Shown: positions 6,491 through 64,000, numbered from the stretch's first letter. The stretch: 64,000 nt of DNA from Camelus ferus (GCF_009834535.1 NC_045717.1:17732001-17796000); one strand, 5' to 3'. Notes: generated by a model not told the origin, from the sequence alone. A program made the numbers and translations.

Positions 6491-7474
6491 TTTACTGCCT
6501 TTTAAGCTTACCTAATAAAAATCACTTAAAAACAGTTATTTATAAAGAAAGATTGAAATCTCATTAAACAAAAGTTACTGACTGAGCACAGACCATGTGC
6601 ATTTGCTCACTTAGTGTATTGATTTCATTATCACAGGCCGTGCCTACTGTTTTCCAGATCACAGTCCCAGAATAGCTCATTTAGTTCCCACAACAGTTCT
6701 CTGAGGCAGGTAGAGAGAAATGGAGGTGCAGAGTGGTGAAGAAAGTGGCTCAGGTTTACACAGTGGGCAGAGCAGGAATTTGCACCCAGTGGACTGACTC
6801 CCACATCCCTTTGTCTGATGGCTATGTTGCATTGCCTCAGGAGGGGCAGGTGGGCCTCATGGGAGCTGGAAAATAACCAGAACATCATCTCTACATCATC
6901 CTTCCTTGAATTTCTTGCATGGATGACTCCAGAGGAAGAATCTGCTTGATTCATATTAAGTTAGAGGTGCACACTACAAAGTGTTGTAGACCCCGGGTAG
7001 GGACGTCTTGTGGTATCTGAAGCTCTGGGAGGATCAGGATTTATCAGAAGGGAGGAGAGGAGAAGAGTAGCAATAGCTGGAAACTCAGTGAAGGAACATT
7101 TTCATGTTTGGAAGCAAAATCCCTAGAAGGATAGAAGGGTAGAGTCTTTGGGGACAGCCAGCCATGGGTTCAGGTTTCGGATCTGCCATTTTGACAACTT
7201 CACCTTGAACAAGCTGCTTGGCCTCTCTGCACCCCAATATTCTTAATAAGTATTCTAAAAATTCTCAAAACAAGGTGAAAAAAACAGCACCTCCCCCACT
7301 ATATTGATGAGAGGATTAAATCATAGGAGGCACAGAGTAAGAACTCAACTGATGTTACCTGTCATTTACCAGGAGCAGCCCCTTGGGCAGGGCCAGCAGT
7401 GGTGGAAGCTGATGGCCGCCCTCCACCCAGGAGCTGAGCTCTCCATGTCACACCTCACTTCAGGCACAGCCTCC

Positions 7475-8422
7475 ATGCAGGGAGCCAACCTCTCAGCAGT
7501 GACTGAATTCATCCTCATCGGCTTCTCCACCTTCCCCCACCTCCAGCTGATGTTCTTCCTGCTCTTCCTGCTCATGTACCTGTTCACGCTGCTGGGGAAC
7601 GTGCTCATCATGGCCACCATCTGGAGCGAGCGCAGCCTCCACACCCCCATGTACCTCTTCCTCTGCGCCCTCTCCATCTCTGAGGTCTTCTACACTTTTG
7701 CTGTCATCCCACGCATGCTGGCCGACCTGCTCTCCACTGATCGCTACATCTCCTTCANNNNNNNNNNNNNNNNNNNNNNNNNNNNNNNNNNNNNNNNNNN
7801 NNNNNNNNNNNNNNNNNNNNNNNNNNNNNNNNNNNNNNNNNNNNNNNNNNNNNNNNNNNNNNNNNNNNNNNNNNNNNNNNNNNNNNNNNNNNNCTGTGCC
7901 TGTCTGGTGGCCTGGTCCTGGGTTGGAGGCTCAGTCATGGGGCTGGTGGTGACATCAGCCATTTTCCAGCTCACCTTCTGTGGCTCTAATGTGATCCATT
8001 ATTTTGGCTGCCACGTGCTACCTCTCCTGAAGTTGGCCTGTGGGGACAATGTCTCCACAGTGGCCATGGGCGTGGACCTAGTGTGTATCACGGCCTTGCT
8101 GGGCTGCTGTCTCCTCATCCTCCTCTCTTACGCCTTCATTGTGGCCACCATCTTGAGGATCCCCTCTGCTGAGGGCCGGCACAAGGCCTTCTCCACCTGT
8201 GCGTCCCACCTCACCGTGGTGGTCGTGCACTATAGCTTCGCCTCCATCATCTACCTCAAGCCCAAGATTCCCCAGTCTCTGGAAGGAGACACGCTCATGG
8301 GCATCACCTACACGGTCCTCACTCCCTTCCTCAGCCCCATCATCTTCAGTCTCAGGAACAAGGAGCTGAAGAATGCCATGAAGAAGACCTTTCTCAGCAT
8401 GCTTTACCCAGAAAAAATGTGA
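7475..8422 (+). CDS. OR10H1: Olfactory receptor, subfamily 10H, OR10H1-like (gene A), 315 aa; codons about 95-140 lie in a 136-N gap
   Basis: MQGANLSAVTEFILIGFS, LHTPMYLFL, KAFSTCASHL, PFLSPIIFSLRNKEL and C-terminal LYPEK as in human OR10H1. ATG is 11 nt after the acceptor cctcacttcag|. The gap length (136) equals the homologous length in gene B, so the frame is kept. The 372-aa ORF in the track runs upstream into the probable intron. Confidence 0.85.
   Translation: MQGANLSAVTEFILIGFSTFPHLQLMFFLLFLLMYLFTLLGNVLIMATIWSERSLHTPMYLFLCALSISEVFYTFAVIPRMLADLLSTDRYISFXXXXXXXXXXXXXXXXXXXXXXXXXXXXXXXXXXXXXXXXXXXXXXCACLVAWSWVGGSVMGLVVTSAIFQLTFCGSNVIHYFGCHVLPLLKLACGDNVSTVAMGVDLVCITALLGCCLLILLSYAFIVATILRIPSAEGRHKAFSTCASHLTVVVVHYSFASIIYLKPKIPQSLEGDTLMGITYTVLTPFLSPIIFSLRNKELKNAMKKTFLSMLYPEKM
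7758..7893. other. Assembly gap or mask (136 N) inside TM3 of OR gene A
   Basis: Run of N seen directly. Confidence 0.99.
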
Positions 8423-10835: not shown

Positions 10836-11786
10836 TCAGGAGCTTAGAGGAGAGAATTTTCTGTGGAAATTTCTCTTTATGGCATTCTTCAGCTCCTTAT
10901 TCCTGAGGCTGAAAATGATTGGGCTGAGAAAGGGGGTGAAGACTGTATAGGTGGTGGCCATCAGAGTGTTACTGTCCATGGAACGGGGGCCCTTGGGCTT
11001 GAGGTAGATGATGGAGGCAAAACCGTAGTGCACAATCACTATGGTGAGGTGGGATACACATGTGGAGAAGGTCTTGTGCCGGCCCTCAGCTGAGGGGATC
11101 CTCAAGATAGCAGCCACGATGAAGACATAGGAGAGGACAATGAGGAATAAACACCCCAGTAGGGCTGTGACACAAACCAGGATGACACCCATGGTGACAG
11201 ATGATGTCTCCTTCCCACAGGCCAACTTCAAGAGGGCAAGCACATGACAACCAAAATGGTGGATCTCATTAGACCCACAGAAGGTGAGATGAAAAACTAT
11301 CAGTGTCAACATCATCCCCATGACTGAGCCACCAGCCCAGGACCAGGACACGAGACGGGCACAGTCACGTGTGCTCATGAGCACGTTGTAGTGCAGAGGG
11401 TGGCAGATGGCCACGTAGCGGTCATAGCCCATGATCATGAGCAGGAAGGAGTGGGTGTAGCCAAACGTGAAGGAGAAGAACATCTGGCTGGCACAGGCCA
11501 CGAAGGAGATGGAGCGGTGGGTGGAGAGCATGTCGACCAGCATTTGAGGGGTGACGGCAACAGTGAACAGAATCTCGGAGATGGAGAGGGCGCACAGGAA
11601 GAGGTACATGGGGGTGTGGAGGCTGTGCTCGCTCCAGATGGTGGCCATGATGAGCAGGTTGCCCAGGAGTGTGAACAGGTACATGAGCAGGTACAGCAGG
11701 AAGAAGGCAGGCAGGAGATGCTGAGGGAAGGTGGAGAAGCCGATGAGGATGAATTCAGACACTGTGCTATAGTTCTGACCAGACAA
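10836..11786 (-). CDS. OR10H4: Olfactory receptor OR10H3/OR10H4-like (copy 1), intact 316-codon frame beginning with TTG, no ATG at the canonical start
   Basis: (L)SGQNYSTVSEFILIGFSTFPQHLLP, MGYDRYVAICHPLHY, KTFSTCVSHL, SLRNKELKNAIKRNFHRKFSPLSS match human OR10H3/H4. The first codon is TTG (plus-strand caa at 11784-11786). Main exon probably starts at 11797. Confidence 0.88.
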   Translation of the reverse strand: MSGQNYSTVSEFILIGFSTFPQHLLPAFFLLYLLMYLFTLLGNLLIMATIWSEHSLHTPMYLFLCALSISEILFTVAVTPQMLVDMLSTHRSISFVACASQMFFSFTFGYTHSFLLMIMGYDRYVAICHPLHYNVLMSTRDCARLVSWSWAGGSVMGMMLTLIVFHLTFCGSNEIHHFGCHVLALLKLACGKETSSVTMGVILVCVTALLGCLFLIVLSYVFIVAAILRIPSAEGRHKTFSTCVSHLTIVIVHYGFASIIYLKPKGPRSMDSNTLMATTYTVFTPFLSPIIFSLRNKELKNAIKRNFHRKFSPLSS

Positions 11787-13189
11787 GGATGCTGCATCTG
11801 GTGAGATCAGGAACAGAATGAAGGCAGAGTGGTTAAAACAGAGGTTCTAACATAGATTAAACAGCAGTTGAAGAAGTCTATACTATATAACTATTTGCTT
11901 AACTTGTCTGAGTCAAAATCTTCATCAGTAAGATGGATTAAATCATAGCAGTTCCTACCATTCAGCATTGTGATAAAGATAAAGTGGATCAGTATATTAA
12001 GTGCTTAAAACATAATTTGACCACTGGTTTCTTATTAACAGTGTCAAAAATAAAGAAATGCTCCCATTTTTGAAACCACTAAAGATAGACATGCAAGATA
12101 AAGGTCACATGCTATTGAACAGTGTGCCTGTTCTAGAAAATGTATTTGGATCTTGGGGTTAAAAAATTCCTTCAGTGTCCTGTGTTTTAAGTGATTGTTG
12201 AACCCATTACATGTATTTTATTGGTAATCATTTATGTCATCTTATTTCATATTTGATTTATTTATAGTAAAGGAACTGAACAGAAAGTTTCAAAGTAAAA
12301 GGATGGACAAATATATGCTAGGCAAATATGTACAAAAGGAAGGCTGAAGCAGCAATCTTCAAAACAGAAAAAAATGAGATTGAAAAAAACAACAATTACA
12401 ATAACTGTATTGCCGTATTCCACTAAAAGGACCAGTGTTCCTGGAGAGATGGTCTGGGCAAGGAGCACGCCTTGTACATCTTGTGCCAGAGTGAAATAAA
12501 ACTTTCACTGTGAAAGGTTAATGTTAAAAGCATGCAGCAACCGGATTGAAAACGTGTCCATTGGCTTAAGCTGATCATCAAAGCAAATGATCGTTGTACG
12601 GATGATGGAGGAGAAAAGTAAATGACACCACAAGGAAGCAACCAGACAAATCCAAAGGTGGAACATTCCACAGAACAATTGGTTTAGTCTCAACAATGAG
12701 ACAACGTCATGAAAAGAATGACCAGAATTCCAAGCGACATAACAACCGGATGCAATATAGGGTACCAGATTGAATCTTGATTTAGATAAACCAGCTATAA
12801 AGTATTGTTAAAGGAATAGAGACAACATTGTTTATGATATGAATGAATGATGAGGCATGAATAATATTAAGGGGTTCTTATTTATTCAGTTATTAGTTTT
12901 ATGTGTGATCTTGTTATTTTGGCTGGGAAGGAAAATATTCTTAGTTTAAGTGCATCCCTGAAATGTACAAATCACACATGTACGTGTGCCAAGGGACAAA
13001 GAGGATTATTTCATACAGGTTAGAAGAACATCATAGTTTCCATCATAAATACGATTAATCAATGTAACAATATACTCTGGCATATTAAGTGACAAGTAAT
13101 CGGTACAATTCTAGTGAAAGAGATGTAAAATAAAAATAGTTAATGAATAATAGACAGAATTAAAAATTTAGCTAGAAATTTAAATACAT

Positions 13190-13999: not shown

Positions 14000-15600
14000 T
14001 GGAGCTCAGAATTCAACTTATGTAATAGTAATTACTACAATGCAATTAATAATATTCAAACATTAACTGACAAATATTTTTAGACTCCTCAAACAACAGA
14101 AATATTTTTTAAGCACTCAGAAGACTCTCATAAAAACTGACCTGACATTAGATATAAAATAATCTTCCATCAATTCCAAAGTATAAATATTATATATATT
14201 ATAATGCACTAAAATTACAATTCAGTGGATAAGGAATAGCTTTTCAAACCCCACATATTTAAAAGCAAAATAATTTAGTAAATAAACTTTTCTTTCAATG
14301 GTTAATCATGAAATAAATTAAGAAATATTTCTAATTAAATAATTCAAGCATCTCATGTTAGAAGATCAGGCTAAAATAACATTGAAGGGAAATACACAAG
14401 TTTAAATATATTTATCAAGCAATTTTATCCAGAAAAAAATCATGCTTAAAAAAAGTTAAGATTAGGTTATCGAAAAAGATTAATAAGATAGAGAGAAATA
14501 AGGAGAAGATACCAATAACCAAATATGAAATTAAAATTGGGGAATAAATGCAACAATAATGGGTATTTGAAATTAATTTAAAAATAGTAAGAAAATACAT
14601 TGACAAATATGAAACTGTAGATGAAATGAATGAATTCTTAGAAGAATATAAAATTCCAAAACTGGCACAAGAAAAAATAGGGGTCCCAAATACACAAATA
14701 CGTTATTTTTTAATTGAAAGTTTTAGTTAAAGACCTTCCTTCTCTATAATCATCAGCCCCAGTGAGTTTGCAAGTGAGCTCTCCTAAACGTCTAAGGAAT
14801 AGCTGCTGAGTATCTTACACATGTTGTTCAACAAACAGAAAAATACATGAAGTTGCCCAGCTCATTTCATTAAATTGATGTAATCTTGATTCTAACACCA
14901 GGTAAGAATATTTGTAAGAAAAAAATAATTATGGGTTCGTTTGATCTACACATGCAGGTTTTAAAAATCTGTAATAAGACATAACCTAGTAAAATTCTAT
15001 GGTAATTAAAAACAGTGCATTGTGATCACGTAGTTTTGGTTTATCCCATGAATGACAAGGATGGTTTAGCATCAGAAAACCTGTCATGTGAATCCTTACA
15101 GGAACACACTAAAAAAGAAAAATCATATACGCATTTCCTCCAAGGTAGGAATAATTTTCTAAAATTCAACTCCTACTCATGATTTTCAAAAAAGCCTCTT
15201 TGTAACATGCCGGGAAGGCAACTTTCTTAGCTAGTTAAAGAGCATATACCACAAAACTGGCAAGTATTATACTAATTGGGAAACTAGATGCATTATTTTA
15301 GGATCAGGAACAAGCCAAGGATACTCACTGCCTCTGCTGTTCTTTAACACGGAACTGAAAGTCATGAGCAGTGCTAAGGAAAGAAAAAGAAAGAACATGT
15401 GTAAAGATTGGAAGGGAAGAGAAAATGATCATCCACCCAGAAAAGATAAAAGAATTAGACGAATAAACTACAACCATAAGAGAGCGTAAGGCTGCCGAAT
15501 GTAAGATCAACTTCTGAAAGTCACAGTATTTCTCATAGTATTGCACCAGTAATAATCATTCAGAGTATATAACTGGAGTTAAAATTAGGACCCCCAATAG
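14000..15600 (+). mobile_element. Highly degenerate old L1 ORF2 remnant (homologous about 19630-22000 and 28050-29880)
   Basis: AT-rich sequence with recognisable L1 ORF2 motifs (aaattcaactcctactcatgatt, ggaaggcaactttcttag, aggaacaagccaaggatactcactg). Confidence 0.55.
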
Positions 15601-16328: not shown

Positions 16329-16371
16329 CCTCTCCCTCCTGGTCCCCCTCACCCTGGCCTGGCTCTTCCAT
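16329..16371 (-). CDS. Candidate upstream coding mini-exon for OR10H4-like copy 1 (MEEPGQGEGDQEGE plus phase-1 G)
   Basis: ATG GAA GAG ... GAG G|GTAGGA. The 43 nt give phase 1, matching the acceptor ctcaccag|AT GCA GCA TCC TTG at 11797. Conserved in four copies. Splicing is inferred, not observed. Confidence 0.5.
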
Positions 16372-18209: not shown

Positions 18210-19160
18210 TTAGTAGCTTAGGGGACAGAATGTTCTGTAGAAGCTTCTCTTTATGGAATTCTTCAGCTCCTTATTCCTGAGGCTGAAAATGATTGGGCTA
18301 AGAAAGGGGGTGAAGACTGTATAGGTGGTGGCCATCAGAGTGTTACTGTCCATGGAACGGGGGCCCTTGGGCTTGAGGTAGATGATGGAGGCAAAACCAT
18401 AGTGCACAATCACTATGGTGAGGTGGGATACACATGTGGAGAAGGTCTTGTGCCGGCCCTCAGCTGAGGGGATCCTCAAGATGGCGGCCACGATGAAGAC
18501 ATAGGAGAGGACGATGAGGAATAAACACCCCAGTAGGGCTGTGACACAAACCAGGATCACACTCATGGTGACAGATGATGTCTCCTTCCCACAGGCCAAC
18601 TTCAAGAGGGCAAGCACATGACAGGCAAAATGGTGGATCTCATTAGACCCACAGAAGGTGAGATGAAAAACTGTCAATGTCAACATCATTCCCACGACTG
18701 AGCCACCAGCCCAGGACCAGGACACAAGACGAGCACAACCACCAGGGCTCATGAGCATGTTGTAGCGCAGAGGGTGGCAGATGGCCACGTAGCGGTCATA
18801 GCCCATGATCATGAGCAGGAAGGAGTGGGTGAAACCAAACGTGAAGGAGAAGAACATCTGGCTGGCACAGGCAGTGAAGGAGATGGAGTGGTGGATGGAG
18901 AGCATGTCGACCAGCATTCGAGGGGTGACGGCAACAGTGAACAGAATCTCGGAGATGGAGAGGGCGCACAGGAAGAGGTACATGGGGGTGTGGAGGCTGT
19001 GCTCGCTCCAGATGGTGGCCATGATGAGCAGGTTGCCCAGGAGTGTGAACAGGTACATGAGCAGGTACAGCAGGAAGAAGGCAGGCAGGAGATGCTGAGG
19101 GAAGGTGGAGAAGCCGATGAGGATGAATTCAGACACTGTGCTATAGTTCTGACCAGACAA
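18210..19160 (-). CDS. OR10H4: Olfactory receptor OR10H3/OR10H4-like (copy 2), intact 316-codon frame beginning with TTG
   Basis: Same motifs as copy 1 (MGYDRYVAICHPLRY, KTFSTCVSHL, SLRNKEL). TTG at 19160-19158. Acceptor ctcaccag| before 19171. Confidence 0.88.
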   Translation of the reverse strand: MSGQNYSTVSEFILIGFSTFPQHLLPAFFLLYLLMYLFTLLGNLLIMATIWSEHSLHTPMYLFLCALSISEILFTVAVTPRMLVDMLSIHHSISFTACASQMFFSFTFGFTHSFLLMIMGYDRYVAICHPLRYNMLMSPGGCARLVSWSWAGGSVVGMMLTLTVFHLTFCGSNEIHHFACHVLALLKLACGKETSSVTMSVILVCVTALLGCLFLIVLSYVFIVAAILRIPSAEGRHKTFSTCVSHLTIVIVHYGFASIIYLKPKGPRSMDSNTLMATTYTVFTPFLSPIIFSLRNKELKNSIKRSFYRTFCPLSY

Positions 19161-19459
19161 GGATGCTGCATCTGGTGAGATCAGAAATAGGATGAAGTCA
19201 CTGCAGTTAAATCAGAGGCTCTAACATAGATTAAATGGCAATTAAAGACCTCCATACTATATAACTATTTGCTTAACTTGTCTGAGTCTCACAATCTTCA
19301 TCAGTGAGATGGAATAAATGATAATACTTCTTACCAGAATAAGCATATGAAATCTGCTCACTTCATTTCATTAGCTTAATGCAATCTTGATTTTAAACCA
19401 GGTAAATTGTTAATAAGAAAAGAAAATTACGGGCCCACCATTTCATCTGTCCGTGCAGA

Positions 19460-20003: not shown

Positions 20004-21454
20004 TTGATTATGGCACAAAAACAGACACATAGATCAATGGAACAGAACAGAGAGTGCAGAAATAAACCCATGCACCTATATTCAAATAATCTACTACAAA
20101 AGAAGCAAGAATATACAATGGAGAAAAGACAATCTCTTCAACAAGTGGTGCTGGGAAAACTGGACAGCTGCATGTAAAAAATGAGATTAGTACATTTCCT
20201 CACAATATATTCAAAAATAAACTCCAGATGGATTAAAGAGTTAAATGTAAGACCTAAAACCATGAAACTCCTAGAAGAAAGCACAGGCAGAACAGTCCGA
20301 CATAAATTGTAGCAATATTTTTTTGGATCTGCCTCCTAAAGCAAAAGAAATAAACACAGAAATAAATGGAATCTAATTAATCTTAAAATCATTTACATAG
20401 AGAAGGAAACCATCAACAAAACAAAAAAAGAACCTATGGAATGGGAGAAAATGTTTGCAAAGATTATGACCAACAAGGAGTTAATATCCAAAATATATAA
20501 ACAGCTCATAGAACTCGATTTCAGAAAACAATCTATCAAAAATGTGCAGAAGACAAGAATAGACATTTTTCCAAAGAAGACATACAAATGGCTAACAGGA
20601 ACATGAAAAGATGCTCAACACTGTTAATTATTAGAGAAATGCAAATCAGTAACAACAGTGAGACACCACCTCATACCTGTCAGAATGGCTATCATCAAAA
20701 AGTCTATAAANNNNNNNNNNNNNNNNNNNNNNNNNNNNNNNNNNNNNNNNNNNNNNNNNNNNNNNNNNNNNNNNNNNNNNNNNNNNNNNNNNNNNNNNNN
20801 NNNNNNNNNNNNNNNNNNNNNNNNNNNNNNNNNNNNNNNNNNNNNNNNNNNNNNNNNNNNNNGGTACTTATTTGGTAGAAATGAAAACACTAATTTGAAA
20901 AGATACATGCACCTCAGTGATCATAGCAGTACTATTTACAATAATCAAGATTTGAAAGCAACCCAAGTGCCCATCAGCAGAAGGATGATTGGCTTAAGAA
21001 GATGTGGTATATATAGTATTCAGCCATAAAAAAGAATAAAAATTCTTCAATTTGCAGCAACGTGGACGGACCTAGAGAATATTATGCTAGTGAAATAGAC
21101 AAAGATAAATACTGTATGATATCACGCATATGTGGAATCTGTAAAACAGTGCAAACGAGTGTATATGCAAAACAGAAACAGACTCACAATATAGAAAACA
21201 ACTAGCAGTTACCAAAGGGAAGGAAGATAGGGAACAGGAAAATTCAGGGTATGGGATTAAGAGATACAAACTACTATGTATAAAATAGATGAGCAGCAAA
21301 GATGTATTGTATAGCACAGGGAGTTACAGCTACTATCTTGTAATAACCTTGAATGGAGTATAATTTGTAAAAATACTGAATCACTATGCTGTACACCAGA
21401 AACTAATATAATATTGTAAATCAACCATACTTCAGTTTTAAAAAACCTTAAAAA
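20004..21454 (+). mobile_element. 5'-truncated L1 (ORF2 C-terminus plus 3'UTR) inserted in unit 2 with about 14-bp TSD; contains a 152-N gap (20711-20862)
   Basis: [12 protein letters not shown]-type ORF2 segment through the A-rich tail. Flanked by aagaatatatacta / aagaatatgtgcta. The empty site aaagaatatatactacaaaac is present in unit 3 (about 29491). Confidence 0.85.
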
Positions 21455-23054
21455 AGAATATGTGCTACAAAACTAGCAGGTAGCTTACTAATGGGGAACT
21501 TTTGATGCATTATTTTAGGATCAAGACTCCAAGGTTACTTACTGTCTAGGCTGTTCTTTAAAACTGAACTGAAAGCCATGAGCAGTGCTCTAAGGAAAGG
21601 AAAAGAGAAGGTATATAAGGTTGGAAGGGAAGAAACATGGTCACGTACCTAGAGAGGGTGAAAGAATCAAGATGTAATATGTTAGAACAAAAAGAAGCAC
21701 AAAGCTGCGGAAGGCAAACCGACTTCCCCAAAACATAGTATTTCTCATGGTATTACACCAGCAATTATCTCTCAAAACATAGAACTGAAGTTAAGCAGGC
21801 GAAGACTCTTAAGAGTGACACAGACTATGAAGTAAAAGCCCTCAACCATTTGCTCTTAGGATCCTCTTACAATAAAACACTGAGTTCCCAAAGGGCTTTT
21901 GTTTGACGGGGGTCAGAACTATCAATCTTTCCCATTTTAGAAATCGAACCTGAGAATCTTTTAAAGGATTTGTATTAGTGTATCTAAAAGAACAACAATG
22001 AATCTATTACATTTTAATATAGTGACATTTTAAGGAAAGTAATCACATTTTCAAATAATAAGTAGTGATAATAGTGGTCCTGTTCTACATTTTCGCAAGT
22101 ACGTTCCTCGTCTGGCCTGGTGGTAGACAACTTAATGCTGTGTCTGATTCTTTGTCAGTCCGTGGCAGTATGTCGTTTTACTTAACGCATGTGACAAAAA
22201 TATATCCTCACGTGTACTGCCAAGGTAGGGACCTGGTGGACCCTCAGAAATGGTCTCAGGGAATCCCAGGGGTCCTCATATTATATTTTGAAAACCTTTG
22301 TTATAAAATATCTAGGATTCAACAACAAACATGTAATACCTCCAAAGACAAAAATGTTAGCCAATGATAAAAATGTAGAGGATGATCTGAATACATGTGG
22401 AAACTGTTTACTTTCCTGGATGGGATGATCTAATATGATAATGGTGTCACTTCTTCCCCCAAATTATACCATCAGTACAATTGCATTTAGGACTCCAGTG
22501 AGTGGACTGTAAATTTAGTAACTGTCCTAAATTTCCTCTGAAAAAAAGTCAGTGCACAATGATACTCATCTTATCATTATTATTGTGAGCAGGACAGATT
22601 TGTCTTCCCAGGGATTATGGCACATTCTAGAGTCATAGTCATTTTTAAAAATGTGAACCAGGAACAGACATACACATCCATTAAACTGACTGGATATCTC
22701 CGAAAATATCCCATTATTATTCATAATGTAATATATGATAAAGGTGGCAGCACAAATAAAGGAAAAGACGCATTGTTTCCCAGTTTGTGGTAGGAAAACT
22801 GTTCATTTTATGAAGCAAAGTAAATCCGAATTTCTGCCAAAGACCACATGCAAAGGTGGAATCCAGATGGATTCAAGACATAAATGTGAAACAAAGTATA
22901 AAGTTAACAGGAGAAAGTGAAAGAGAATTACTTTGTGGATCTTAGTAGTGGAGAAGGACTTCCTAAACCAAACTTCTAAAGCATAAACGTTAAGCTGATT
23001 TTTAAAAGACATGAAAACGTCAACGTTAAGAATTTCTGTTCCTGCTAACTACTA

Positions 23055-24160: not shown

Positions 24161-24203
24161 CCTCTCTGTCCTGGTTCCCCTCTCCCTGGCCTGCCTCTTC
24201 CAT
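24161..24203 (-). CDS. Candidate upstream coding mini-exon for OR10H4-like copy 2 (MEEAGQGEGNQDRE plus phase-1 G)
   Basis: ATG at 24203, 43 nt, then GTAGGA at 24160. Same phase as copy 1. Confidence 0.5.
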
Positions 24204-26397: not shown

Positions 26398-27348
26398 TCA
26401 GGAGCTTGAGGGACAGAATGTTCTGTGGAAGGTTCTCTTCATGGCATTCTTCAGCTCCTTATTCCTGAGGCTGAAGATGATCGGGCTAAGAAAGGGGGTG
26501 AAGACTGTATAGGTGGTGGCCATCAGAGTGTTACTGTCCATGGAACGGGAGCCCTTGGGCTTGAGGTAGATGATGGAGGCAAAACCGTAGTGCACAATCA
26601 CTATGGTGAGGTGGGACACACATGTGGAGAAGGTCTTGTGCCGGCCCTCAGCTGAGGGGATCCTCAAGATGGCGGCCACGATGAAGACATAGGAGAGGAC
26701 GATGAGGAATAAGCACCCCATCAGGGCTGTGACACAAACCAGGATGACACCCATGGTGACATACAATGTCTCCTTCTCACAGGCCAACTTCAAGAGAGAA
26801 AGCACATGGCAGACAAAGTGGTGGATCTCATTAGACCCACAGAAGGTGAGATGAAAAACTATCAGTGTCAACATCATCCCCATGACTGAGCCACCAGCCC
26901 AGGACCAGGACACGAGACGGGCACAGTCACGTGTGCTCATGAGCACGTTGTAGTGCAGAGGGTGGCAGATGGCCACGTAGCGGTCATAGCCCATGATCAT
27001 GAGCAGGAAGGAGTGGGTGAAGCCAAACGTGAAGGAGAAGAACATCTGGCTGGCACAGGCCACGAAGGAGATGGAGCGGTGGGTGGAGAGCATGTCGACC
27101 AGCATTCGAGGGGTGACAGCAACAGTGAACAGAATCTCGGAGATGGAGAGGGCGCACAGGAAGAGGTACATGGGCGTGTGGAGGCTGCGCTCCCTCCAGA
27201 TGGTGGCCATGATGAGCAGGTTGCCCAGGAGTGTGAACAGGTACATGAGCAGGTACAGCAGGAAGAAGGCAGGCAGGAGATGCTGAGGGAAGGTGGAGAA
27301 GCCGATGAGGATGAATTCAGACACTGTGCTATAGTTCTGACCAGACAA
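26398..27348 (-). CDS. OR10H4: Olfactory receptor OR10H3/OR10H4-like (copy 3), intact 316-codon frame beginning with TTG
   Basis: Same motifs. LLKLACEKET resembles OR10H4 LKLACENKT. TTG at 27348-27346. Acceptor ctcaccag| before 27359. Confidence 0.88.
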   Translation of the reverse strand: MSGQNYSTVSEFILIGFSTFPQHLLPAFFLLYLLMYLFTLLGNLLIMATIWRERSLHTPMYLFLCALSISEILFTVAVTPRMLVDMLSTHRSISFVACASQMFFSFTFGFTHSFLLMIMGYDRYVAICHPLHYNVLMSTRDCARLVSWSWAGGSVMGMMLTLIVFHLTFCGSNEIHHFVCHVLSLLKLACEKETLYVTMGVILVCVTALMGCLFLIVLSYVFIVAAILRIPSAEGRHKTFSTCVSHLTIVIVHYGFASIIYLKPKGSRSMDSNTLMATTYTVFTPFLSPIIFSLRNKELKNAMKRTFHRTFCPSSS

Positions 27349-30300
27349 GGATGCTGCATCTGGTGAGATCAGAAATAGGATGAAGTCACTGCAGTTAAAT
27401 CAGAGGCTCTAACATAGATTAAATGGCAATTAAAGACCTCCATACTATATGATCTGGCTATACAAATGTGCCCATAGGCCACAGCTGAGCACCAAAGTGT
27501 GATAATATGCAGGATGGAGGAACAAGCTAAATGACACCATGAAGAAGCAATTAGAAAATCCAGAAGGCGAAATGTTCTATAGAACAACTGGTCTGGTCTC
27601 AGCAAGTCAGGATGAAGAAGAGGGTGAAGAGGAATTCAAGGGACATAACAACCATGTGCAATATTGGGTATCAGATATTTAGATAAGCTAGTTGTAAGGT
27701 AGTTTTAAGGAAACAGATAAGATTTTGATTGTGGTATGAGTGAATGATGAGTTAAAATAATATGAAGAGATTATTCTTAATCTAGTTGTTAATTTTAAGT
27801 GTGATCTTATTATTTTGGCTTTGAAGGAAAATATTACTAGTTTAAATGCATATTGAAATTTAAAATGTACACACACATGCACACAACAAGAGACAAAGAA
27901 GACCATTTTATGAAGATTATTGGAACATTGTAGAACCTGTATGAATATAATTAACCTATAGAACAATATACCCTAGATTATTAGTAATAAATAAAGAACA
28001 CCACTTCTGTGAAACAGATATGAGATAGGAATAGCTAAATCAATACTAGATAAACTGGCTAAAAACTTGAAATTACAAATTTTAACAGAATTCAGAAATG
28101 TAATTTGGGAATTATCAGTTATAATGCAATTAATAATATTCAGACATTAGCTCCTGGATATAATTGGGCTCCTCTCCAGAGATCAAACATTTTTTTTTTC
28201 AACCAGAAAGAGGGGTTTAACAAAATTTGACCTTGTTTTGGACTCAGAGAAATTCCCCATCCACTTCGAAGTGTATGTGTGTGTATATATATATATTTAT
28301 AAATATATATATAATATATATATATTATATAGATTACAGTATACAAAAGTTGGAAATCAATAGAGAAAGAATTCCAAATTCCATAAGTTGGAAACTCAAT
28401 ATAGTGCTAAATAATACTTTATTTCAAGAGTAAATCTTTGACACAGCATTGTAAAATGAGTATTACTCATTAAAAAAAGTTTTAAAAAAGATTAAATCAT
28501 AAAATGAATAAAGAAATACTTATAATTAAATCATTTAAGCATCAAATGTCAAGTTTTTAAGCTAAAACAGTTCTATGTTGGGGAACATACTGCTTTAAAT
28601 ATATATATCAAGAAATTTTACCCAGAAAAATTGTGCTTAATACAACAAAAATCAGCAATTATAAAAAATTAATAAGATAGAAACAAGGACAAGATGCCAA
28701 GAAAATATAACATTAAAACATGGAAACAATTAGAGAAATAAATGATATTTTTAAATTACTAAAAAGAGTAAGAAAAATATAAATGAAGAAATATGAAACA
28801 CTAAGTGAAATGACTAAATCATCAGAAACATGTAAAATTTCATAACTGGTAAAGGAACAAATAGAAACCCTGGATATTTTAAAAAGTTTTAGAGAAATTG
28901 AAGTGGTTAAAGACCTTCTCTTTTATAATCATCAGCCCCAGTGAATTTGTGGTGAGTGCTCCTAAATTTGTAACGAACAGTTGATGAATATCTTACACAT
29001 GTTCTTCAAAAACAAAAAACAGAAAAATATCTGAAACTGCCCAACTCATTTCACTGAGGTAATGCAGTCTTGGTATTAAAACTAGGTAAGAAAAGACAAA
29101 TTATGGGCTTTACCTATCCATGCAGATTTTAAAATCCATTAAAAGGCATCGTCTAGTCAAATAAAATGGTTACAATAGTATTTTATGATCAAGTGGTGTT
29201 TGTTTAGCCCAAGAGTGACAAGACGGGGCAGCATCAGATAACCTGTCATGTGATTCATCACATCAACAAACTAACCAAGAAAGATCATAGAATTCTTTTG
29301 ATCAAGGAAAGAAGATATTTTCCAAAATTCAACTACTTTTTATGATTTTTTAAATTTTATGTAATGTGACATATAACACTGTGTCAGTTTTAGGTATACA
29401 AGACAATGATTTCATATAGGTACACCTATTTATGATTTTTAAAAAAGCCTTTTTGCAACATGAAATCAAAGGGGACTTTCTTAGATACTCAAAGAATATA
29501 TACTACAAAACCAGCACATAGTATCTGAGAGGGGAAGTGTACTCGCATTATTTTACGATTAGGAACAAACCAAGGTTACTCACTGTCTCTGCTGTTCTTT
29601 GACATGGAGCTGGAAGTCATGAGCGGTGCTACAAGGAAAGAAAAGGACTAAGTTATATAAGGATTGGAAGGGAAGAGACTGGAGCATCTACCTAGAAAGA
29701 TAAAAGAATCAAGATGTGATATGTCAGAACAAGAGGGCACAGTACTGTAGAAGGCAGGGTCAGCCTCTGAAACTCATAGTATTTCTCACAGTATTTCTCA
29801 CACTATTACACCAGTAATAATCACTCAAAATACAGAATTTAAGTACAAGTAAGATAACATTTCCAATAATGGCCCAAACTATAAAGAAACAGCTCTCAAG
29901 CATTTTGGCTTCAGGATCATTTTACACTCAAAAACTTTTGAGCCCCCTACAGGGCTTTTGTTTGAGCGGGTTTGTAACTATCACTTTTTTAAAATCATAT
30001 TAGAAATTAAAACTGAGGTTCTTTAAAAGTATTTAGTAATTGGTATAATTAAAAGAATAATAATAAACCTATTACATATTCATATTAGAAACACATTTAT
30101 ATGGGAGTAACTACATTTTCAGAAAACATTGAGTGAGAAGAGTGGCCTTGTCTTACATTTTCACAAATATGCCTGATGTTTGCCTCGATAGGAGATAAAC
30201 TAAGCTCATACCTGCTTCTTCATTTAGTCAGTGGTGTTATGTTGCTTTAACTGAAGTGCATGATGAAAACACATCCACACGTGTAACCGGAAAAGTAAGG

Positions 30301-32000: not shown

Positions 32001-33745
32001 AACATATGCATATAGAAATAATACATAATGTGCAAAAACACATACAGATCTAAGAGTACACATGAAGTATTTTAAATGACTGTAAGAACAAAAAGGAAAT
32101 GAGGTGAAAGAAACGGAATATATTTATGAAACAAGAGAAGGACCTTGTGCAAACCAATGATGAGCAAAAGCTGCAAACTGGAAATGTCATTGACTCAAAC
32201 CTCTGCATCTGAAGTCCTTCATAAAATTAAAACTATATTCTTATGAATAACTTGAGCCAAGCTGCTGCCCAGAGCTCCTGAACTCCTTGTCTCTGAAACA
32301 GGGCCCCCTCATACTTGCACCCATTGCATTGCCTCTAAGTACTCTCCACAGTAGGGGGGTCAGCCTGGAACTTGGAGGACACAGATCTCCAGGACAGTGA
32401 GGACATTTGCAGGACTGAGGATGCTCTTTGGAGAGAGGAAGGTTGCATTTATGACCTGAAAAACAAATCTTATGAACACCGAAACACCCCACCCAGAAAC
32501 TAAGACACTGGCATCAACTGCTTTTTATGCCTCATCTCTCCCTCATCTCAGCATTTTTCTTCCCAAATTAACAGTTTCTGGCTTTTGCTTCTCAACATCC
32601 ATATGGCTCCATCTCCTCTCTCCTGGACCACTGCCCCAGGCTCCTCCCATGTCACCTTCTATGCCCCCTAACCACTCTGGCTTCCAGAGAGAATTTTCTG
32701 CAACATACATAAAGTATGCAGTCATCACACCCAAGGTTCAAATCCAAATGGCTTGTAAGCGCTGAGCCTCCTCACCCCAACTGAAAATGGGGTTACACAG
32801 AGAGCTGCCTTCAGTGGATCCATGAGGATTCCTGTAAAGGGCTGAGAGTTTGCCAAATAAATATCTCTGACATTGAGGTTATGCTCCTTGTTCTGATCTG
32901 ATTTAGTGCCTTCCTTCTGTTCCAGATGACACCAGCTGGCCTCAGTTTAAACTCATGGTCTCTGACCGAGATGGGGCACATAGTACCTCTGGTAAGCACA
33001 CAATGCAGCTTCCCCCCAGGAGGCTGATCCAACCTCCACTCTCTTCTCCAGCCCTCTCCTCACCCTTCCAGCCTACCTTCCCACCTCCTGCTTGGTGGGA
33101 TGTCCGTGATTCTTGAGGCAGCGCTCTCCCATCTCCCTAGCAAGTGGACAGAATTCTGTATCCTCTGGTCTCACGGAGGATGGCCCCACACACGTACTGA
33201 ACAAACATCCCACACATCACCAGAGTGCACCCAGTTCACACTCTGTCTTCCTCAGAGCCTCCGCTCCAGGTTAGCAGTGGCCACATTTGCCCCAGACCAG
33301 GACCCAGCGGCTAAGACAAAACACACCTAGAGCATGATTTCTCAAGCTCAGCACTGGTGACATATGGGGCAAGATCATTCTTTGGCTCTCTTTTTCATGG
33401 TATAATGTTTGGCAGAATCTCTGGTCTCAACCTACCGGATGCCTGTAGCATCCCTTCCCCGAAATGAGTCAGGGAAACCTAAAATGATCAAGACATGTCC
33501 AAATGTCCACTGTGGTGCAGAATTGCCCTCGGCTGAGAACCACTGATATAGAAGCTGCAAAGAGCATTTTGGGGTGAGGGGTGGAGTATGAAAACTATGG
33601 ACCCAGAGTGAGCAACCTAAGAAGACCCCAGGCAGTCTCCCAACAAAGCTGAGATCCACTCTTACTACCCCTTGCCCCAGCCCAGACCCCATCGCCAGGC
33701 TGGGCAGTGCTACCCACCCACAGCTGTACAACTCTGCCTTCCTAC

Positions 33746-33788
33746 CCTCTCTCTCCTGGTGCTCCCCTGCCTGGGGTGCCTCTTCCAT
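33746..33788 (-). CDS. Candidate upstream coding mini-exon for OR10H4-like copy 3 (MEEAPQAGEHQERE plus phase-1 G)
   Basis: ATG at 33788, 43 nt, then GTAGGA at 33745. Same phase. Confidence 0.5.
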
Positions 33789-34441
33789 GAAACAGCCAGC
33801 AGCAGAGGGCAGAAGAATCTCTCCTGCTTGCTGCTGTCAGCAGCGGCCACAGGCAGGTGTGGGGTCAGACCTAGTGCTTCTTGGATCTGATACAGTGTCC
33901 TTTATCCCTGCTGCAGGCTCCAACAGGCTGATCCCAACAGCCTCTCTAGGAACCAACTGGAAAGTATGGTTTTCAGATCCTAGAGAGGCTGGGAGGGACC
34001 TCAGGGGGCCTTCTGGGATCTGCAGTTTCTACTTCTTCCTCTAACTATTCACATGCAACAATGACTCCCTGCTGCTTCTATCTGCCCAGAGAGACACCAG
34101 CCCCTGTTAAGGGCTTAGAAGCTCCCAGTCTTGTGGGACACAGGGCTGGATACAGATGCCCTCAACCCCTTAGGTTCAAGGTATTGTCAGAGGGAAGGCA
34201 GGAGCTGGAGGAGCCCAGAGTGGGAGTCCAGGGCTGACCCCTTGGGTAAGGGCAGTGGGAAGGCATCCCAGAATAAGGGTAATTTGCAGCTGAGTCTGGA
34301 AGAATGGTGTCTCTTGGGTAATGTAAGTGCTCAAATTCTTCTACCCAAATGGAAAGCCTCACCTCTTCTTGGTTAAGTTCTACCAGATCCCTGTTGTTGT
34401 GGGGTGCAAGCCAGAAAGTTTGACATTACCATATGCTTCCC

Positions 34442-40592: not shown

Positions 40593-41528
40593 ATGGGCAA
40601 TCACACCCAAGTCTCTGAATTCATCCTTCTCGGCCTCTCTGAGCAACCACTGCACAGGCAGATACTCTTTGGTTTATCCTTCGGCCTGTATCTAATTGGG
40701 TGCACAGGGAATCTGCTCACCATCCTGGCCATCGTCAGGGACCCTCACCTCCACAGCCCCATGTACTTCTTCCTCAGCAACTTGTCTCTTCTCGACATCT
40801 GCTTTACATCCACCACCATCCCCAAGATGCTGGTAAACCACCTGTGCGGGAACACCACCATCTCCTTCTCAGCTTGCCTGGCTCAGATGTATTTCTTCAT
40901 TGCCTTTGGGGCAGCTGACAGCATCCTTCTATCAGCCATGGCTTATGACCGCTACCTGGCCATCTGCTGCCCACTGCACTACGTGACAATCATGAGCATC
41001 CTTCGGTGTGCCTCGCTGGTGCTGATACCCTGGATCTCAGCCAACCTCGTCTCCATGGTCCACACTATCCTGATGACCCGCTTGTCCTTTTGCACCAATA
41101 GGATCCCACACTTCCTCTGTGACCTCAATGCCTTGATCAAGCTCTCCTGCTCAGATACTCAAGTCAATGAGATGCTGGTGTTGGTCCTTGGGGGCTCAGT
41201 AGTTCTGATCCCTTTTGTGTACATCATGGCCTCTTACACACCTATTGCTGTGGCTGTGTGGAAGGTGCCCTCTGCCCAGGGCAGGTGGAAAGCGTTCTCC
41301 ACCTGTGGCTCTCACCTTTGTGTTGTCTCTCTGTTCTATGGGACTATCATTGGAGTCTACTTCAACCCTGCATCCACACACACCACTCAGAAGGACATGG
41401 CCGCCACAGTGATGTACACCATGGTCACCCCCATGCTGAACCCCTTCATCTACAGCCTGCGGAACCGAGATCTGAAGGGTGCCCTCAGGAGACTTCTCAG
41501 TAGGAATTCCTTTGCTAAGCCTCTTTGA
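40593..41528 (+). CDS. Olfactory receptor family 1 (probably the OR1AB-type neighbour of the OR10H cluster), intact 311 aa
   Basis: MGNHTQVSEFILLG, HLHSPMYFFLSNLS, MAYDRYLAICCPLHY, KAFSTCGSHL, PMLNPFIYSLRNRD. ATG in gccATGG context 12 nt after the acceptor tttctgcccttag| (40580). The subfamily assignment is inferred from synteny. Confidence 0.92.
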   Translation: MGNHTQVSEFILLGLSEQPLHRQILFGLSFGLYLIGCTGNLLTILAIVRDPHLHSPMYFFLSNLSLLDICFTSTTIPKMLVNHLCGNTTISFSACLAQMYFFIAFGAADSILLSAMAYDRYLAICCPLHYVTIMSILRCASLVLIPWISANLVSMVHTILMTRLSFCTNRIPHFLCDLNALIKLSCSDTQVNEMLVLVLGGSVVLIPFVYIMASYTPIAVAVWKVPSAQGRWKAFSTCGSHLCVVSLFYGTIIGVYFNPASTHTTQKDMAATVMYTMVTPMLNPFIYSLRNRDLKGALRRLLSRNSFAKPL

Positions 41529-48600: not shown

Positions 48601-50340
48601 GTCCAAGAAGAACTCACTTAATTATCACAATAACTATTTAGGCTAGGTAGGGGGAAATGGAGGTACACAGAGGCAAAGAAACTTGCTCAAGTTTACACCA
48701 CAGGTAGAGCAGGGGTTCTAACTCAGATCATCTGTCTCCTCACAACTTTTGGTTGGACAGTTATGTTGCATTGCCCCAGAAGGTGCAGATGCACCTCAGG
48801 ATAGCTGGGAAACAACCAGGACATTACTGCTACGCGGTCTCCTGCCTCTGATTCATTGCACAACTCCAGAGGAAGAATCGGTTGATGCAGGTTAAGTTAA
48901 CGATGCACACAGGTCCAGGGATTTACAGACCTGGGATAAGGACATATTGTGGTATCTGAAGCTCTGGGGACAACAGGACATATCAGATGGGAGCAGGAGG
49001 GCAGAGGAGCAATGGCTGGAAGCTCTGGTGAAGGAAATTTCATTTTGGGGAAGCAACCTAGAGGGATAGAAGGGTAGAGTCTTTGGGGACAGCCAGCCAT
49101 GGGGTCAGGTTTTGGATCTGCCATTTTGACAACTTCACCTTGAACAAGCTGCTTGGCCTCTCTGCACCCCGACATTCTCAGTGAGTATTCTCAAAATACT
49201 CACGACAAGGTGACAGAAACAGCACCTCCCCCACTACATTAGGAGAGGACTAACTCACAAGAAGCACAGAGTAAGAACTACAGCAATGCCACCTGTCATT
49301 TACCAGGAGCAGCAGCCCCTTGGGCAGGGCCAGCAGTGGTGGAAGCTGATGGCCGCCCTCCACCCAGGAGCTGAGCTCTCCATGTCACACCTCACTTCAG
49401 GCACAGCCTCCATGCAGGCAGCCAACCTCTCAGCAGTGACTGAATTCATCCTCATCGGCTTCTCCAACTTCCCCCACCTCCAGCTGATGTTCTTCCTGCT
49501 CTTCCTGCTCATGTACCTGTTCATGCTGCTGGGGAACGTGCTCATCATGGCCACCATCTGGAGTGAGCGCAGCCTCCACACCCCCATGTACCTCTTCCTC
49601 TGCACCCTCTCCATCTCTGAGATCCTCTACACTTTTACCATCATCCCACGCATGCTGGCCGACCTGTTCTCCACCCACCGCTCCATCTCCTTCATGGCCT
49701 GTGCCAGCCAGATGTTCTTCTCCTTCATGTTCGGCTTCACCCACTCCTTCCTGCTCACTGTCATGGGCTACGACCGCTATGTGGCCATCTGCCACCCCCT
49801 GCGCTACAACGTGCTCATGAGCCCCCATGGCTGTGCCTGTCTGGTGGCCTGGTCCTGGGTTGGAGGCTCGGTCATGGGGCTGGTGGTGACATCAGCCATT
49901 TTCCAGCTCACCTTCTGTGGACCCAATGAGGTCCGCCATTTCTTCTGCCATGTGCCACCTCTCTTGAAATTGGCCTGTGGAGTCAATGTCTCCACAGTGG
50001 CCATGAGCGTGGGCCTGGTGTGTATCATGGCCCTGCTGGGCTGCTGTCTCCTCATCCTCCTCTCTTACGCCTTCATTGTGGCCACCATCTTGAGGATCCC
50101 CTCCGCTGAGGGCCGGCACAAGGCCTTCTCCACCTGTGCGTCCCACCTCACTGTGGTGGTTGTGCACTATGGCTTCGCCTCCGTCATCTACCTCAAGCCC
50201 AAGATTCCCCAGTCTCTGGAAGGAGACACGCTGATGGGCATCACCTACACGGTCCTCACTCCCTTCCTCAGCCCCATCATCTTCAGTCTCAGGAGCAAGG
50301 AGCTGACGAATGCCATGAGGAAGACCTTCCTCAGCAAGCT
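42620..50340 (+). repeat. Segmental duplicate arm B, an older direct paralogue of 900-8400; part 42957-45060 is near-identical in reverse to 60680-62794
   Basis: Same order of MER58A, MER20, L1MB, promoter block, MER20, L1MC, inverted L1MB and OR as arm A, but visibly more diverged. ORF 43297-43479 is nearly identical to 62271-62453. Confidence 0.88.
44826..44935 (+). promoter_or_regulatory. Putative OR promoter of gene B (O/E-like TCCCTGGGAA, HD site TAATTG, O/E TCCCCAGGGG)
   Basis: Motifs seen directly and conserved with arms A and C. The donor CAG|GTGAGT follows at 45171/45172. Confidence 0.5.
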
Positions 50341-50359
50341 CTTTCTCCGAAGCTCCTGA
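49412..50359 (+). CDS. OR10H1: Olfactory receptor, subfamily 10H, OR10H1/OR10H5-like (gene B), intact 315 aa
   Basis: MQAANLSAVTEFILIGFS, MGYDRYVAICHPLRY, HVPPLLKLACG, KAFSTCASHL, PFLSPIIFSLRSKEL. C-terminal SKLF resembles OR10H5. ATG is 11 nt after the acceptor at 49400. Exact 1:1 orthology is not resolvable by eye. Confidence 0.88.
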   Translation: MQAANLSAVTEFILIGFSNFPHLQLMFFLLFLLMYLFMLLGNVLIMATIWSERSLHTPMYLFLCTLSISEILYTFTIIPRMLADLFSTHRSISFMACASQMFFSFMFGFTHSFLLTVMGYDRYVAICHPLRYNVLMSPHGCACLVAWSWVGGSVMGLVVTSAIFQLTFCGPNEVRHFFCHVPPLLKLACGVNVSTVAMSVGLVCIMALLGCCLLILLSYAFIVATILRIPSAEGRHKAFSTCASHLTVVVVHYGFASVIYLKPKIPQSLEGDTLMGITYTVLTPFLSPIIFSLRSKELTNAMRKTFLSKLFLRSS

Positions 50360-55421: not shown

Positions 55422-56369
55422 TCACATTTTTTCTGGGTAAAGCATGCTGAGGAAGGTCTTCTTCATGGCATTCTTCAGCTCCTTGTTCCTGAGACTGAAG
55501 ATGATGGGGCTGAGGAAGGGAGTGAGGACCGTGTAGGTGATGCCCATCAGCGTGTCTCCTTCCAGAGACTGGGGAATCTTGGGCTTGAGGTAGATGACGG
55601 AGGCGAAGCTATAGTGCACGACCACCACGGTGAGGTGGGACGCACAGGTGGAGAAGGCCTTGTGCCGGCCCTCAGCAGAGGGGATCCTCAAGATGGTGGC
55701 CACAATGAAGGCGTAAGAGAGGAGGATGAGGAGACAGCAGCCCAGCAGGGCCGTAATACACACTAGGACCACGCCCATGGCCACTGTGGAGACATTGTCC
55801 CCACAGGCCAACTTCAGGAGAGGTAGCACGTGGCAGACAAAATGATGGATCACATTAGAGCCACAGAAGGTGAGCTGGAAAATGGCTGATGTCACCACCA
55901 GCCCCATAACTGAGCCTCCAACCCAGGACCAGGCCACCAGACAGGCACAGNNNNNNNNNNNNNNNNNNNNNNNNNNNNNNNNNNNNNNNNNNNNNNNNNN
56001 NNNNNNNNNNNNNNNNNNNNNNNNNNNNNNNNNNNNNNNNNNNNNNNNNNNNNNNNNNNNNNNNNNNNNNNNNNNNNNNNNNNNNNTGAAGGAGATGGAG
56101 CGATCAGTGGAGAGCAGGTCAGCCAGCATGCGTGGGATGACAGCAAAAGTGTAGAAGACCTCAGAGATGGAGAGGGCGCAGAGGAAGAGGTACATGGGGG
56201 TGTGGAGGCTGCGCTCGCTCCAGATGGTGGTCATGATGAGCACGTTCCCCAGCAGCGTGAACAGGTACATGAGCAGGAAGAGCAGGAAGAACATCAGCTG
56301 AAGGTGGGGGAAGGTGGAGAAGCCGATGAGGATGAATTCAGTCACTGCTGAGAGGTTGGCTCCCTGCAT
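55422..56369 (-). CDS. OR10H1: Olfactory receptor OR10H1-like (gene C), 315 aa, near-identical inverted paralogue of gene A; 136-N gap in TM3 (55951-56086)
   Basis: Same motifs as gene A. About 13 nucleotide differences counted by eye over about 812 resolved bases (6 amino-acid changes). ATG at 56369, acceptor at 56381. Confidence 0.85.
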   Translation of the reverse strand: MQGANLSAVTEFILIGFSTFPHLQLMFFLLFLLMYLFTLLGNVLIMTTIWSERSLHTPMYLFLCALSISEVFYTFAVIPRMLADLLSTDRSISFXXXXXXXXXXXXXXXXXXXXXXXXXXXXXXXXXXXXXXXXXXXXXXCACLVAWSWVGGSVMGLVVTSAIFQLTFCGSNVIHHFVCHVLPLLKLACGDNVSTVAMGVVLVCITALLGCCLLILLSYAFIVATILRIPSAEGRHKAFSTCASHLTVVVVHYSFASVIYLKPKIPQSLEGDTLMGITYTVLTPFLSPIIFSLRNKELKNAMKKTFLSMLYPEKM

Positions 56370-63594: not shown

Positions 63595-63637
63595 ATGGAA
63601 GAGGCACCCCAGGCAGGGGAGCACCAGGAGAGAGAGG
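63595..63637 (+). CDS. Fourth copy of the candidate OR10H4-type coding mini-exon (MEEAPQAGEHQERE plus G), pointing out of the window
   Basis: Identical to 33746-33788 in reverse. GTAGGA follows at 63638. Confidence 0.4.
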
Positions 63638-64000
63638 GTAGGAAGGCAGAGTTGTACAGCTGTGGGTGGGTAGCACTGCCCAGCCTGGCGATGGGGTCTG
63701 GGCTGGGGCAAGGGGTAGTAAGAGTGGATCTCAGCTTTGTTGGGAGGCTGCCTGGGGTCTTCTTAGTTTGTTCACTCTGGGTCCATAGTTTTCACGCTCC
63801 ACCCCTCACCCCAAAATGCCCTTTGCAGCTTCTATATCAGTGGTTCTCAGCCGAGGGCAATTCTGCACCACAGTGGACATTTCGGACATGTCTTGATCAT
63901 TTTAGGTTTCCCTGACTCATTTCGGGGAAGGGATGCTACAGGCATCTGGTAGGTTGAGACCAGAGATTCTGCCAAACATTATACCATGAAAAAGAGAGCC

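Follow-up and report, generated by a model that had tools for sequence, protein, structure and literature searches.

A stretch of 64,000 nucleotides (nt) from Camelus ferus (GCF_009834535.1 NC_045717.1:17732001-17796000), referred to here as the window and numbered from its first letter, carries three olfactory receptor (OR) genes, copies 1 to 3, whose main exon has a TTG codon exactly at the position of the ancestral ATG. These genes probably encode receptors of the OR10H3/H4 clade with a split open reading frame (ORF), in which the TTG would be an internal leucine codon and the ATG would lie in a conserved 45-nt upstream exon, termed exon B. This reading draws directly on the intact frames, on purifying selection, on the conservation of exon B together with its splice signals and in-frame ATG, and on the intact ORF that results from splicing.

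The main (last) exons of the three copies are as follows, with a slash marking exon borders here and below:

10836 to 11797, minus strand: main exon of copy 1, with the 11-nt leader ATGCAGCATCC, the TTG at 11786-11784, 316 codons, the stop at 10838-10836 and a Pfam 7tm_4 match (E 1e-51).
18210 to 19171, minus strand: main exon of copy 2, with the TTG at 19160-19158 and a Pfam 7tm_4 match.
26398 to 27359, minus strand: main exon of copy 3, with the TTG at 27348-27346 and a Pfam 7tm_4 match.

From the exon starts at 11797, 19171 and 27359, all three copies read ...ctcaccag/ATGCAGCATCC TTG TCT GGT CAG AAC TAT AGC, and the frames 10836-11786, 18210-19160 and 26398-27348 comprise 316 codons each without a stop or frameshift. 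Rereading the sequence at these positions thus bears out the first-pass annotation, which had described a TTG in all three OR10H3/H4-like copies with intact frames; the ORF tool used reports these frames solely through permitting TTG starts. In unspliced DNA, an in-frame stop precedes the TTG by 21 codons in copy 1 (TAG) and by 18 codons in copies 2 and 3 (TGA), with no in-frame ATG in between. The ATG at the start of the main exon is out of frame, and the first in-frame methionine of this exon is residue 35 (Met35); for copy 1 these points had been made before and are confirmed in the DNA.

The same 11-nt spacing between acceptor and start position had been noted for the OR10H1-type genes, there with an ordinary ATG, and this holds in all three comparators of the window, which read cag/GCACAGCCTCC ATG:

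7475 to 7477, plus strand: OR10H1-type paralogue with a normal ATG, set 11 nt behind cag.
49412 to 49414, plus strand: ATG of an OR10H1-type comparator.
56369 to 56367, minus strand: ATG of an OR10H1-type comparator.

When the codon was looked up in other camelid assemblies, as a concern about the raw sequence had made desirable, TTG was found in alpaca (4 copies) and dromedary (2 copies), and it is present in donkey too. An assembly error as the source of the TTG is therefore excluded, since these assemblies are independent.

The identity of the genes is clear from their translations, which match Pfam PF13853 (7tm_4) at E 1e-49 to 1e-51 over 277-279 of its 280 profile positions. The best database matches of the three copies are 83-100% identical and named olfactory receptor 10H3-like or 10H4-like, the named top matches coming from camels, pig, cattle, horse, carnivores and primates; one Bactrian camel protein is 100% identical to copy 1. 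The signature motifs of ORs are found in all three translations, namely NYS at residues 5-7, LHTPMY, MGYDRYVAICHPL, KTFSTCVSHL and PIIFSLRNKE.

The frames are under constraint. The Nei-Gojobori ratio of non-synonymous to synonymous divergence (dN/dS) among the three copies is 0.26-0.38 (binomial test against neutrality, p 9e-5 to 3e-3), and comparisons with alpaca, yak, donkey and dingo relatives give 0.16-0.31, the lowest p being about 1e-19; all 36 gene pairs fall between 0.16 and 0.38, every p being <0.004. Neither relaxed constraint (dN/dS near 1) nor disabling mutations were found in the three window copies. Judged by these substitution patterns, the three camel genes are very probably functional, in agreement with the earlier preference for retained function over decay. 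The constraint includes the 33 codons between the TTG and Met35, which are free of indels and stops in 9 of 10 genes and identical across the three camel copies, with fewer non-synonymous changes per site than synonymous ones in codons 2-34 (camel-dingo dN 0.07 vs dS 0.37). This stretch is therefore translated, which makes a start at Met35 unlikely.

A start codon further upstream was sought in each copy by scanning for an ATG that stays in frame up to a GT donor in the phase of the main-exon acceptor, that is, with one codon base before the intron. The scan returned 22-27 candidates per copy, only two of which, termed exon A and exon B, are common to all three; the other ~20 in-phase combinations of ATG and donor per copy are absent from the other copies and were dropped. 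Exon B is located at:

15329 to 15373, minus strand: exon B of copy 1, 45 nt, reading ag/CACTGCTC ATG...GGC A/gtgagt, with the ATG at 15365-15363 and an intron of 3531 nt to the main exon.
21543 to 21587, minus strand: exon B of copy 2 (MAFSSVLKNSLD), with the donor gtaagt and an intron of ~2371 nt, a length made uncertain by the run of N at 20711-20862 within it.
29584 to 29628, minus strand: exon B of copy 3 (MTSSSMSKNSRD), with the donor gtgagt and an intron of 2224 nt.

The alpaca intron orthologous to that of copy 2 is ~4.6 kb long. The layout is the same in all three copies: a pyrimidine tract and AG are followed by CACYGCTC ATG with 34 further nt, which end in ...A/GTGAGT or ...A/GTAAGT. 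The copy 1 peptide consists of MTFSSVLKNSRG and the junction Asn, and joining exon B to the main exon yields an open frame of 332 amino acids (aa) in every copy, with the N-termini MTFSSVLKNSRG-N-AAS-L-SGQNYS... (copy 1), MAFSSVLKNSLD-N-AAS-L-... (copy 2) and MTSSSMSKNSRD-N-AAS-L-... (copy 3).

Conservation of exon B was assessed across 8 lineages whose introns differ by ~20% or more. The exon is 45 nt long without a single indel, while each 35-nt flank contains 86 gap cells, and its mean pairwise identity is 0.79, compared with 0.67 and 0.71 for the flanks. The GT donor and an in-frame ATG are present in 8/8 lineages and the AG acceptor in 7/8; in the dingo units (n=2), the in-frame ATG is at codon 6 instead of codon 1. 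The same order, exon A, then exon B, then main exon, recurs in all units examined, namely five from alpaca, three from dromedary, two from dingo and one each from yak and donkey, and the cag acceptor of the main exon with its 11-nt leader is retained in all these species. Predicted database proteins in which the exon B peptide is followed by xAAS-[L/S/V/T/M]-xGQNYS come from dromedary, yak, Aotus, Nycticebus, macaque, Eulemur and dingo. Among these, the yak 332-aa “olfactory receptor 10H4-like” (P0020) has the same junction and architecture, MTFSSMLKNSKD-S-AAS-S-SGQNYS..., with Ser (TCG or TCA) at the place of the camel Leu (TTG). The N-terminus of the dromedary “Olfactory receptor 10H4” (P0001) likewise contains the junction of exon B and main exon, but this model is a 406-aa chimera over a gap-ridden stretch.

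According to this explanation, the main exon would have lost its own ATG, with the coding sequence divided between exons. Translation would begin at the ATG of exon B, 2.2-3.5 kb upstream of the main exon; exon B would end after the first base of a codon and be joined to the main exon at the cag acceptor, which precedes the TTG by 11 nt, giving a 332-aa receptor of the form M-x11-N-A-A-S-L-S-G-Q-N-Y-S..., in which the TTG is the ordinary Leu17. The apparent ATG at the start of the main exon would then consist of the last two bases of the junction codon (A/AT, Asn) and the G of GCA. Exon A, ~1 kb upstream of exon B, would be an untranslated first exon. On the simplest reading, the ancestor of the clade had, like primates today, an in-exon ATG as well as exon B, and the former may have been lost several times because exon B supplies initiation. 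That translation starts within some upstream exon appears likely, and the balance leans towards the ATG of exon B specifically. We infer that camel transcripts use the junction between exon B and the main exon together with the exon B AUG. The first-pass annotation had mentioned an upstream-exon model as an alternative; a conserved exon with an in-frame ATG has now been found, which reverses the earlier ranking of this model behind initiation at UUG.

Such genes have precedents. Barnes et al. 2020 (BMC Genomics 21:196, PMC7055050) used conservation of the initiator Met and of the splice junction in other mammals to define split OR genes and listed 41 mouse and 13 human genes, OR10H4 included. 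The camel genes share these features, with a main exon devoid of the ATG, an upstream-exon ATG opening a full ORF and conservation of both Met and junction. The human OR10H4 transcript ENST00000641275 (PMC7055050, Supplementary File 3) has an ORF of 305 aa with an intron of 3367 bp after aa 7. It thus resembles the camel genes in belonging to the same clade, in apparently using the same upstream exon and in intron size (3531 bp in copy 1), but human OR10H4 has an extra single-exon isoform with an ATG of its own. The 305-aa proteins of baboon, gelada and marmoset read MLKNSRD/TFPQQ..., where MLKNSRD corresponds to codons 6-12 of exon B. The curated primate isoform would accordingly start at the second Met of exon B and continue from an acceptor within the main exon, losing the NYS site that the camel junction keeps. 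The camel sequence at this internal site, ...ttctccacc..., would provide no AG, so that the sole usable acceptor precedes the TTG by 11 nt and no full-length ORF other than the split one is available.

The closest parallel is provided by the class 1 split ORs of mouse and human (for example Olfr1174-ps, Olfr1175-ps and Olfr1177-ps/OR5D3P; PMC7055050), which had been called pseudogenes or truncated as their main exon has no conserved initiator ATG. There too, an ATG in an adjacent upstream exon restores an ORF of ~320 aa across an intron of a few kb located in the N-terminal tail. They belong to other OR families and are of independent origin, and, unlike the camel genes, they are backed by RNA-seq junction reads. 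The camel genes behave like this class and would be a further member of it; no new mechanism is revealed. A look through the literature for camel OR start-codon problems or for other papers on split ORs brought up nothing beyond Barnes et al. 2020.

Several observations weigh against the split reading as proposed. The exon B peptide has no coding-type substitution pattern, the variable columns being distributed 9/9/4 by codon position; conservation applies to the frame, the ATG and the splice signals, for which the statistics are modest at a length of 45 nt. The exon B ATG has a weak Kozak context with C at -3. All database models with exon B are predicted ones, and the models available for the same genes are mutually inconsistent. 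The human isoform, the only transcript that speaks for use of exon B, appears to have a different acceptor, and it therefore supports exon B but not the exact camel junction. Finally, the three camel copies and one donkey unit have an ATG in exon A whose frame continues into exon B, so that the true start could lie farther upstream.

This last point leads to an alternative in which translation starts in exon A, at 16371, 24203 and 33788, instead of exon B. The corresponding blocks are:

16329 to 16371, minus strand: exon A of copy 1, 43 nt from the ATG to the conserved AGG/gtagga donor, within a conserved block of ~200 nt.
24161 to 24203, minus strand: exon A of copy 2, the 43-nt ATG-to-donor block common to all copies.
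33746 to 33788, minus strand: exon A of copy 3, the same 43-nt block.

The exon A ATG is placed exactly 43 nt before the AGG/GTAGG donor in the units that keep it, and it would be the first AUG if transcription began upstream of exon A. As exon B is 45 nt long, both splice forms remain open and in frame, encoding 349 aa over three coding exons or 334 aa when exon B is skipped. If such a start were used, the result would be a 349-aa, three-exon receptor with an acidic N-terminal extension of 33 residues, unusual for a mammalian OR. Against this stands the fate of the ATG elsewhere: both dingo units have CTG instead, the second donkey unit has ATA and one alpaca unit ATT, and in yak a 1-nt deletion puts the ATG out of frame. 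The 14-aa acidic peptide of exon A is poorly conserved. As a general coding start, exon A was therefore rejected, and as the start in camel, a variant of the upstream-exon initiation considered above, it is unlikely though it retains some weight. From camel to dog, strong conservation of the AGG/GTAGG donor and of the surrounding ~100 nt fits a first exon with promoter-proximal sequence; exon A is probably an untranslated first exon.

Somewhat less support still can be given to a joint reading in which an optional split isoform, as in primates, was made obligatory by repeated independent loss of the ATG (to TTG, GTG, or ACG for the Thr of Aotus), with the coding sequence of camelids and equids perhaps reaching into exon A.

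Two further routes to an upstream start were considered and set aside. The first is a mini-exon close to the main exon:

11959 to 11968, minus strand: proximal mini-exon ATGCTGAATG/gtagga, used by the Bactrian Gnomon model P0002 (MLN-D-AAS...).

It was judged to be ad hoc, as its homologue in copy 2 is 12 nt long and out of frame and the region of copy 3 is non-homologous; donkey has a positional homologue (MLHD...). The second is read-through of the acceptor, as in models from cattle, tiger and seal (...FLISPDAAS...), which in camel is blocked by the TAG or TGA 18-21 codons upstream and by the lack of an ATG.

The intactness of three neighbouring genes has to be judged against their history of sequence exchange. 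The upstream non-coding DNA of the paralogues differs by a Jukes-Cantor distance of 0.21-0.23 (introns differing by ~20%), compared with 0.041 for the orthologous camel-alpaca introns (copy 2 with alpaca b, copy 3 with alpaca a), which puts the age of the paralogues at about five times that of the camel-alpaca split. Copy 1 can be aligned to a yak unit over several kb at 78% identity. Yet the synonymous divergence of the main exons among the three copies is just 0.08-0.10, the three exons share one and the same sequence over their first 150 nt, as do copies 1 and 2 over the first 250 nt, and the divergence climbs steeply at both borders of the main exon. Read from these distances, this is exon-limited gene conversion among the three copies. 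The three TTGs consequently count as one observation and not as independent ones. The statement of the first-pass annotation that the common TTG predates the triplication does not follow from the three copies, since the 5' part of the exon has been converted. Nevertheless, the in-exon ATG must have been lost long ago, as it is also missing in yak, donkey and dingo.

A paralogous cluster of Camelus bactrianus (GCA_048773025.1, CM109927.1, ~22.33 Mb; L008), 90-96% identical to the window and with one unit fewer, shows a different arrangement. Here, exons A and B resemble those of copy 2, and the main exon downstream of them (L008:9990-10951) resembles that of copy 1 and retains the in-exon ATG, reading ccag/GTGCAGATTCC ATG AAC GGT... 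and encoding a protein that begins MNGQNYS... (P0007). This exon has 7 differences from the window copies in its first 17 nt, the remainder being 95.7% identical.

Gene conversion also bears on the proposal that the three genes are non-functional relics without a start codon, their frames only appearing intact and constrained through conversion. The exchange is clearly active, as seen from a coding dS of 0.08-0.10 against an intron distance of 0.21-0.23 and from the identical first 150 nt, and one alpaca copy has a premature TAG at codon 22. But the converted tract itself contains the TTG, meaning that its donor was likewise without an in-exon ATG, and ATG-less copies are intact at dN/dS 0.16-0.33 in yak, donkey and dingo, at distances (dS 0.25-0.5) too large for an unconstrained 951-nt frame. 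Relics are hence an improbable explanation.

The idea put first in the earlier note was that the UUG itself starts a 316-aa single-exon receptor. UUG is a near-cognate codon and has been retained in camelids and donkey precisely where the ATG used to be. Near-cognate initiation, for which UUG is among the weakest codons, needs a purine at -3 and G at +4, and codons such as TCA, TCG and TGG are not near-cognate. A favourable context of this kind was looked for in the three copies and is absent, all of them reading GCATCC TTG T with T at both -3 and +4. Nor is a near-cognate codon conserved among functional relatives: the homologous codon in intact, constrained genes is TTG in camelids and donkey but TCA or TCG in yak, at equal constraint, and GTG in dingo, and the residue in database proteins is L in pig, W or L in horse, V in seals, T in Aotus and M in cats and most primates. 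A codon that varies in this manner cannot be a general start. In transcripts that begin within the intron, moreover, the out-of-frame AUG 11 nt upstream of the UUG would capture scanning ribosomes. With a conserved upstream exon supplying an ATG, the TTG is very unlikely to be the start codon, and this part of the earlier interpretation is abandoned. A start at Met35, giving the 282-aa protein annotated in alpaca and some Bactrian models, has in its favour that Met35 is the first in-frame AUG of the main exon and that the Pfam 7tm_4 match starts nearby, but it is the least credible option of all, as the product would lose the N-terminal NYS glycosylation site and half of the first transmembrane segment, as the out-of-frame AUG at the exon start comes before it, and as the codons ahead of it are constrained.

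Some further observations concern individual units. The junction between exon B and the main exon itself creates an out-of-frame AUG (GGCA/AUGC in copy 1, GACA/AUGC in copies 2 and 3) with a purine at -3; it sits 37 nt downstream of the weak-context AUG of exon B and would catch ribosomes leaking past the latter. Yak unit b has GTG at this position. In one dingo unit (L006:5978-6175), exon B is found just ~150 nt upstream of the main exon and has lost the AG acceptor and the first ATG while retaining the second ATG and the donor; the main-exon acceptor of this unit is a tandem cag/cag, of which the Gnomon model takes the upstream one. The alpaca copy with the premature stop (L004:9888-10840) has the TAG at codon 22 (with the TTG as codon 1), GTGACT as exon B donor and ATT where exon A would have its ATG; annotated as a 279-aa protein from Met35, it is probably decayed and is an example of decay within the OR10H3/H4 family. 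The dromedary locus (GCA_000803125.3, L005) is of little use, with one main exon interrupted, one carrying a premature stop and a third unit ridden with indels. Exons A and B of this third unit (L005:22998-24138) are rich in small indels and substitutions at ~84-88% identity to the window; the unit looks like a low-quality consensus, as this divergence is far above what is expected between Camelus species. It is this region over which the 406-aa dromedary model P0001 is chimeric. In the window itself, an exon-A-like block at 63546-63688 on the plus strand, opposite in orientation, differs by 1 base in the aligned stretch from exon A of copy 3 (33695-33837, minus strand). It is probably the start of an inverted duplicate unit running past the end of the window; alpaca clusters likewise occur in both orientations.

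The other receptors of the window have their own start codons. In the OR10H1-type genes at 7304-8422 (plus), 49286-50359 (plus) and 55422-56495 (minus), the open frame extends 40-odd codons upstream through the apparent cag acceptor, reading MPPVIYQEQQ... with more in-frame ATGs. Those at 7304 and 55422 are near-identical to each other in inverted orientation, and both contain a 136-nt run of N. Between the H3/H4-type and the H1-type genes lies one further gene:

40593 to 41528, plus strand: unrelated OR ORF of 311 aa with a normal ATG (MGNHTQVSEFILLGLS...).

The consequences are chiefly a matter of annotation. That pipelines mis-call these genes had been anticipated, and both truncated models and ad hoc exons do exist. 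Database models of the camelid genes have 282 aa (alpaca and one Bactrian camel, from Met35), 297, 304, 323 (MLND...), 332, 334 or 341 aa, and at least five incompatible N-termini are thus found in public databases. The first exons of other camel models are unrelated inventions, and among the camelid and yak models only those of dromedary and yak use exon B. Repertoire counts that rely on a single exon with an ATG would score such genes as pseudogenes or as truncated. The locus is also a clear case of exon-limited gene conversion and a caution against counting paralogues as independent evidence. For the subfamily as a whole, the conserved 45-nt start exon would give a single consistent 332-aa model in ungulates and carnivores, and the in-exon ATG has repeatedly been lost from genes that are still intact and constrained.

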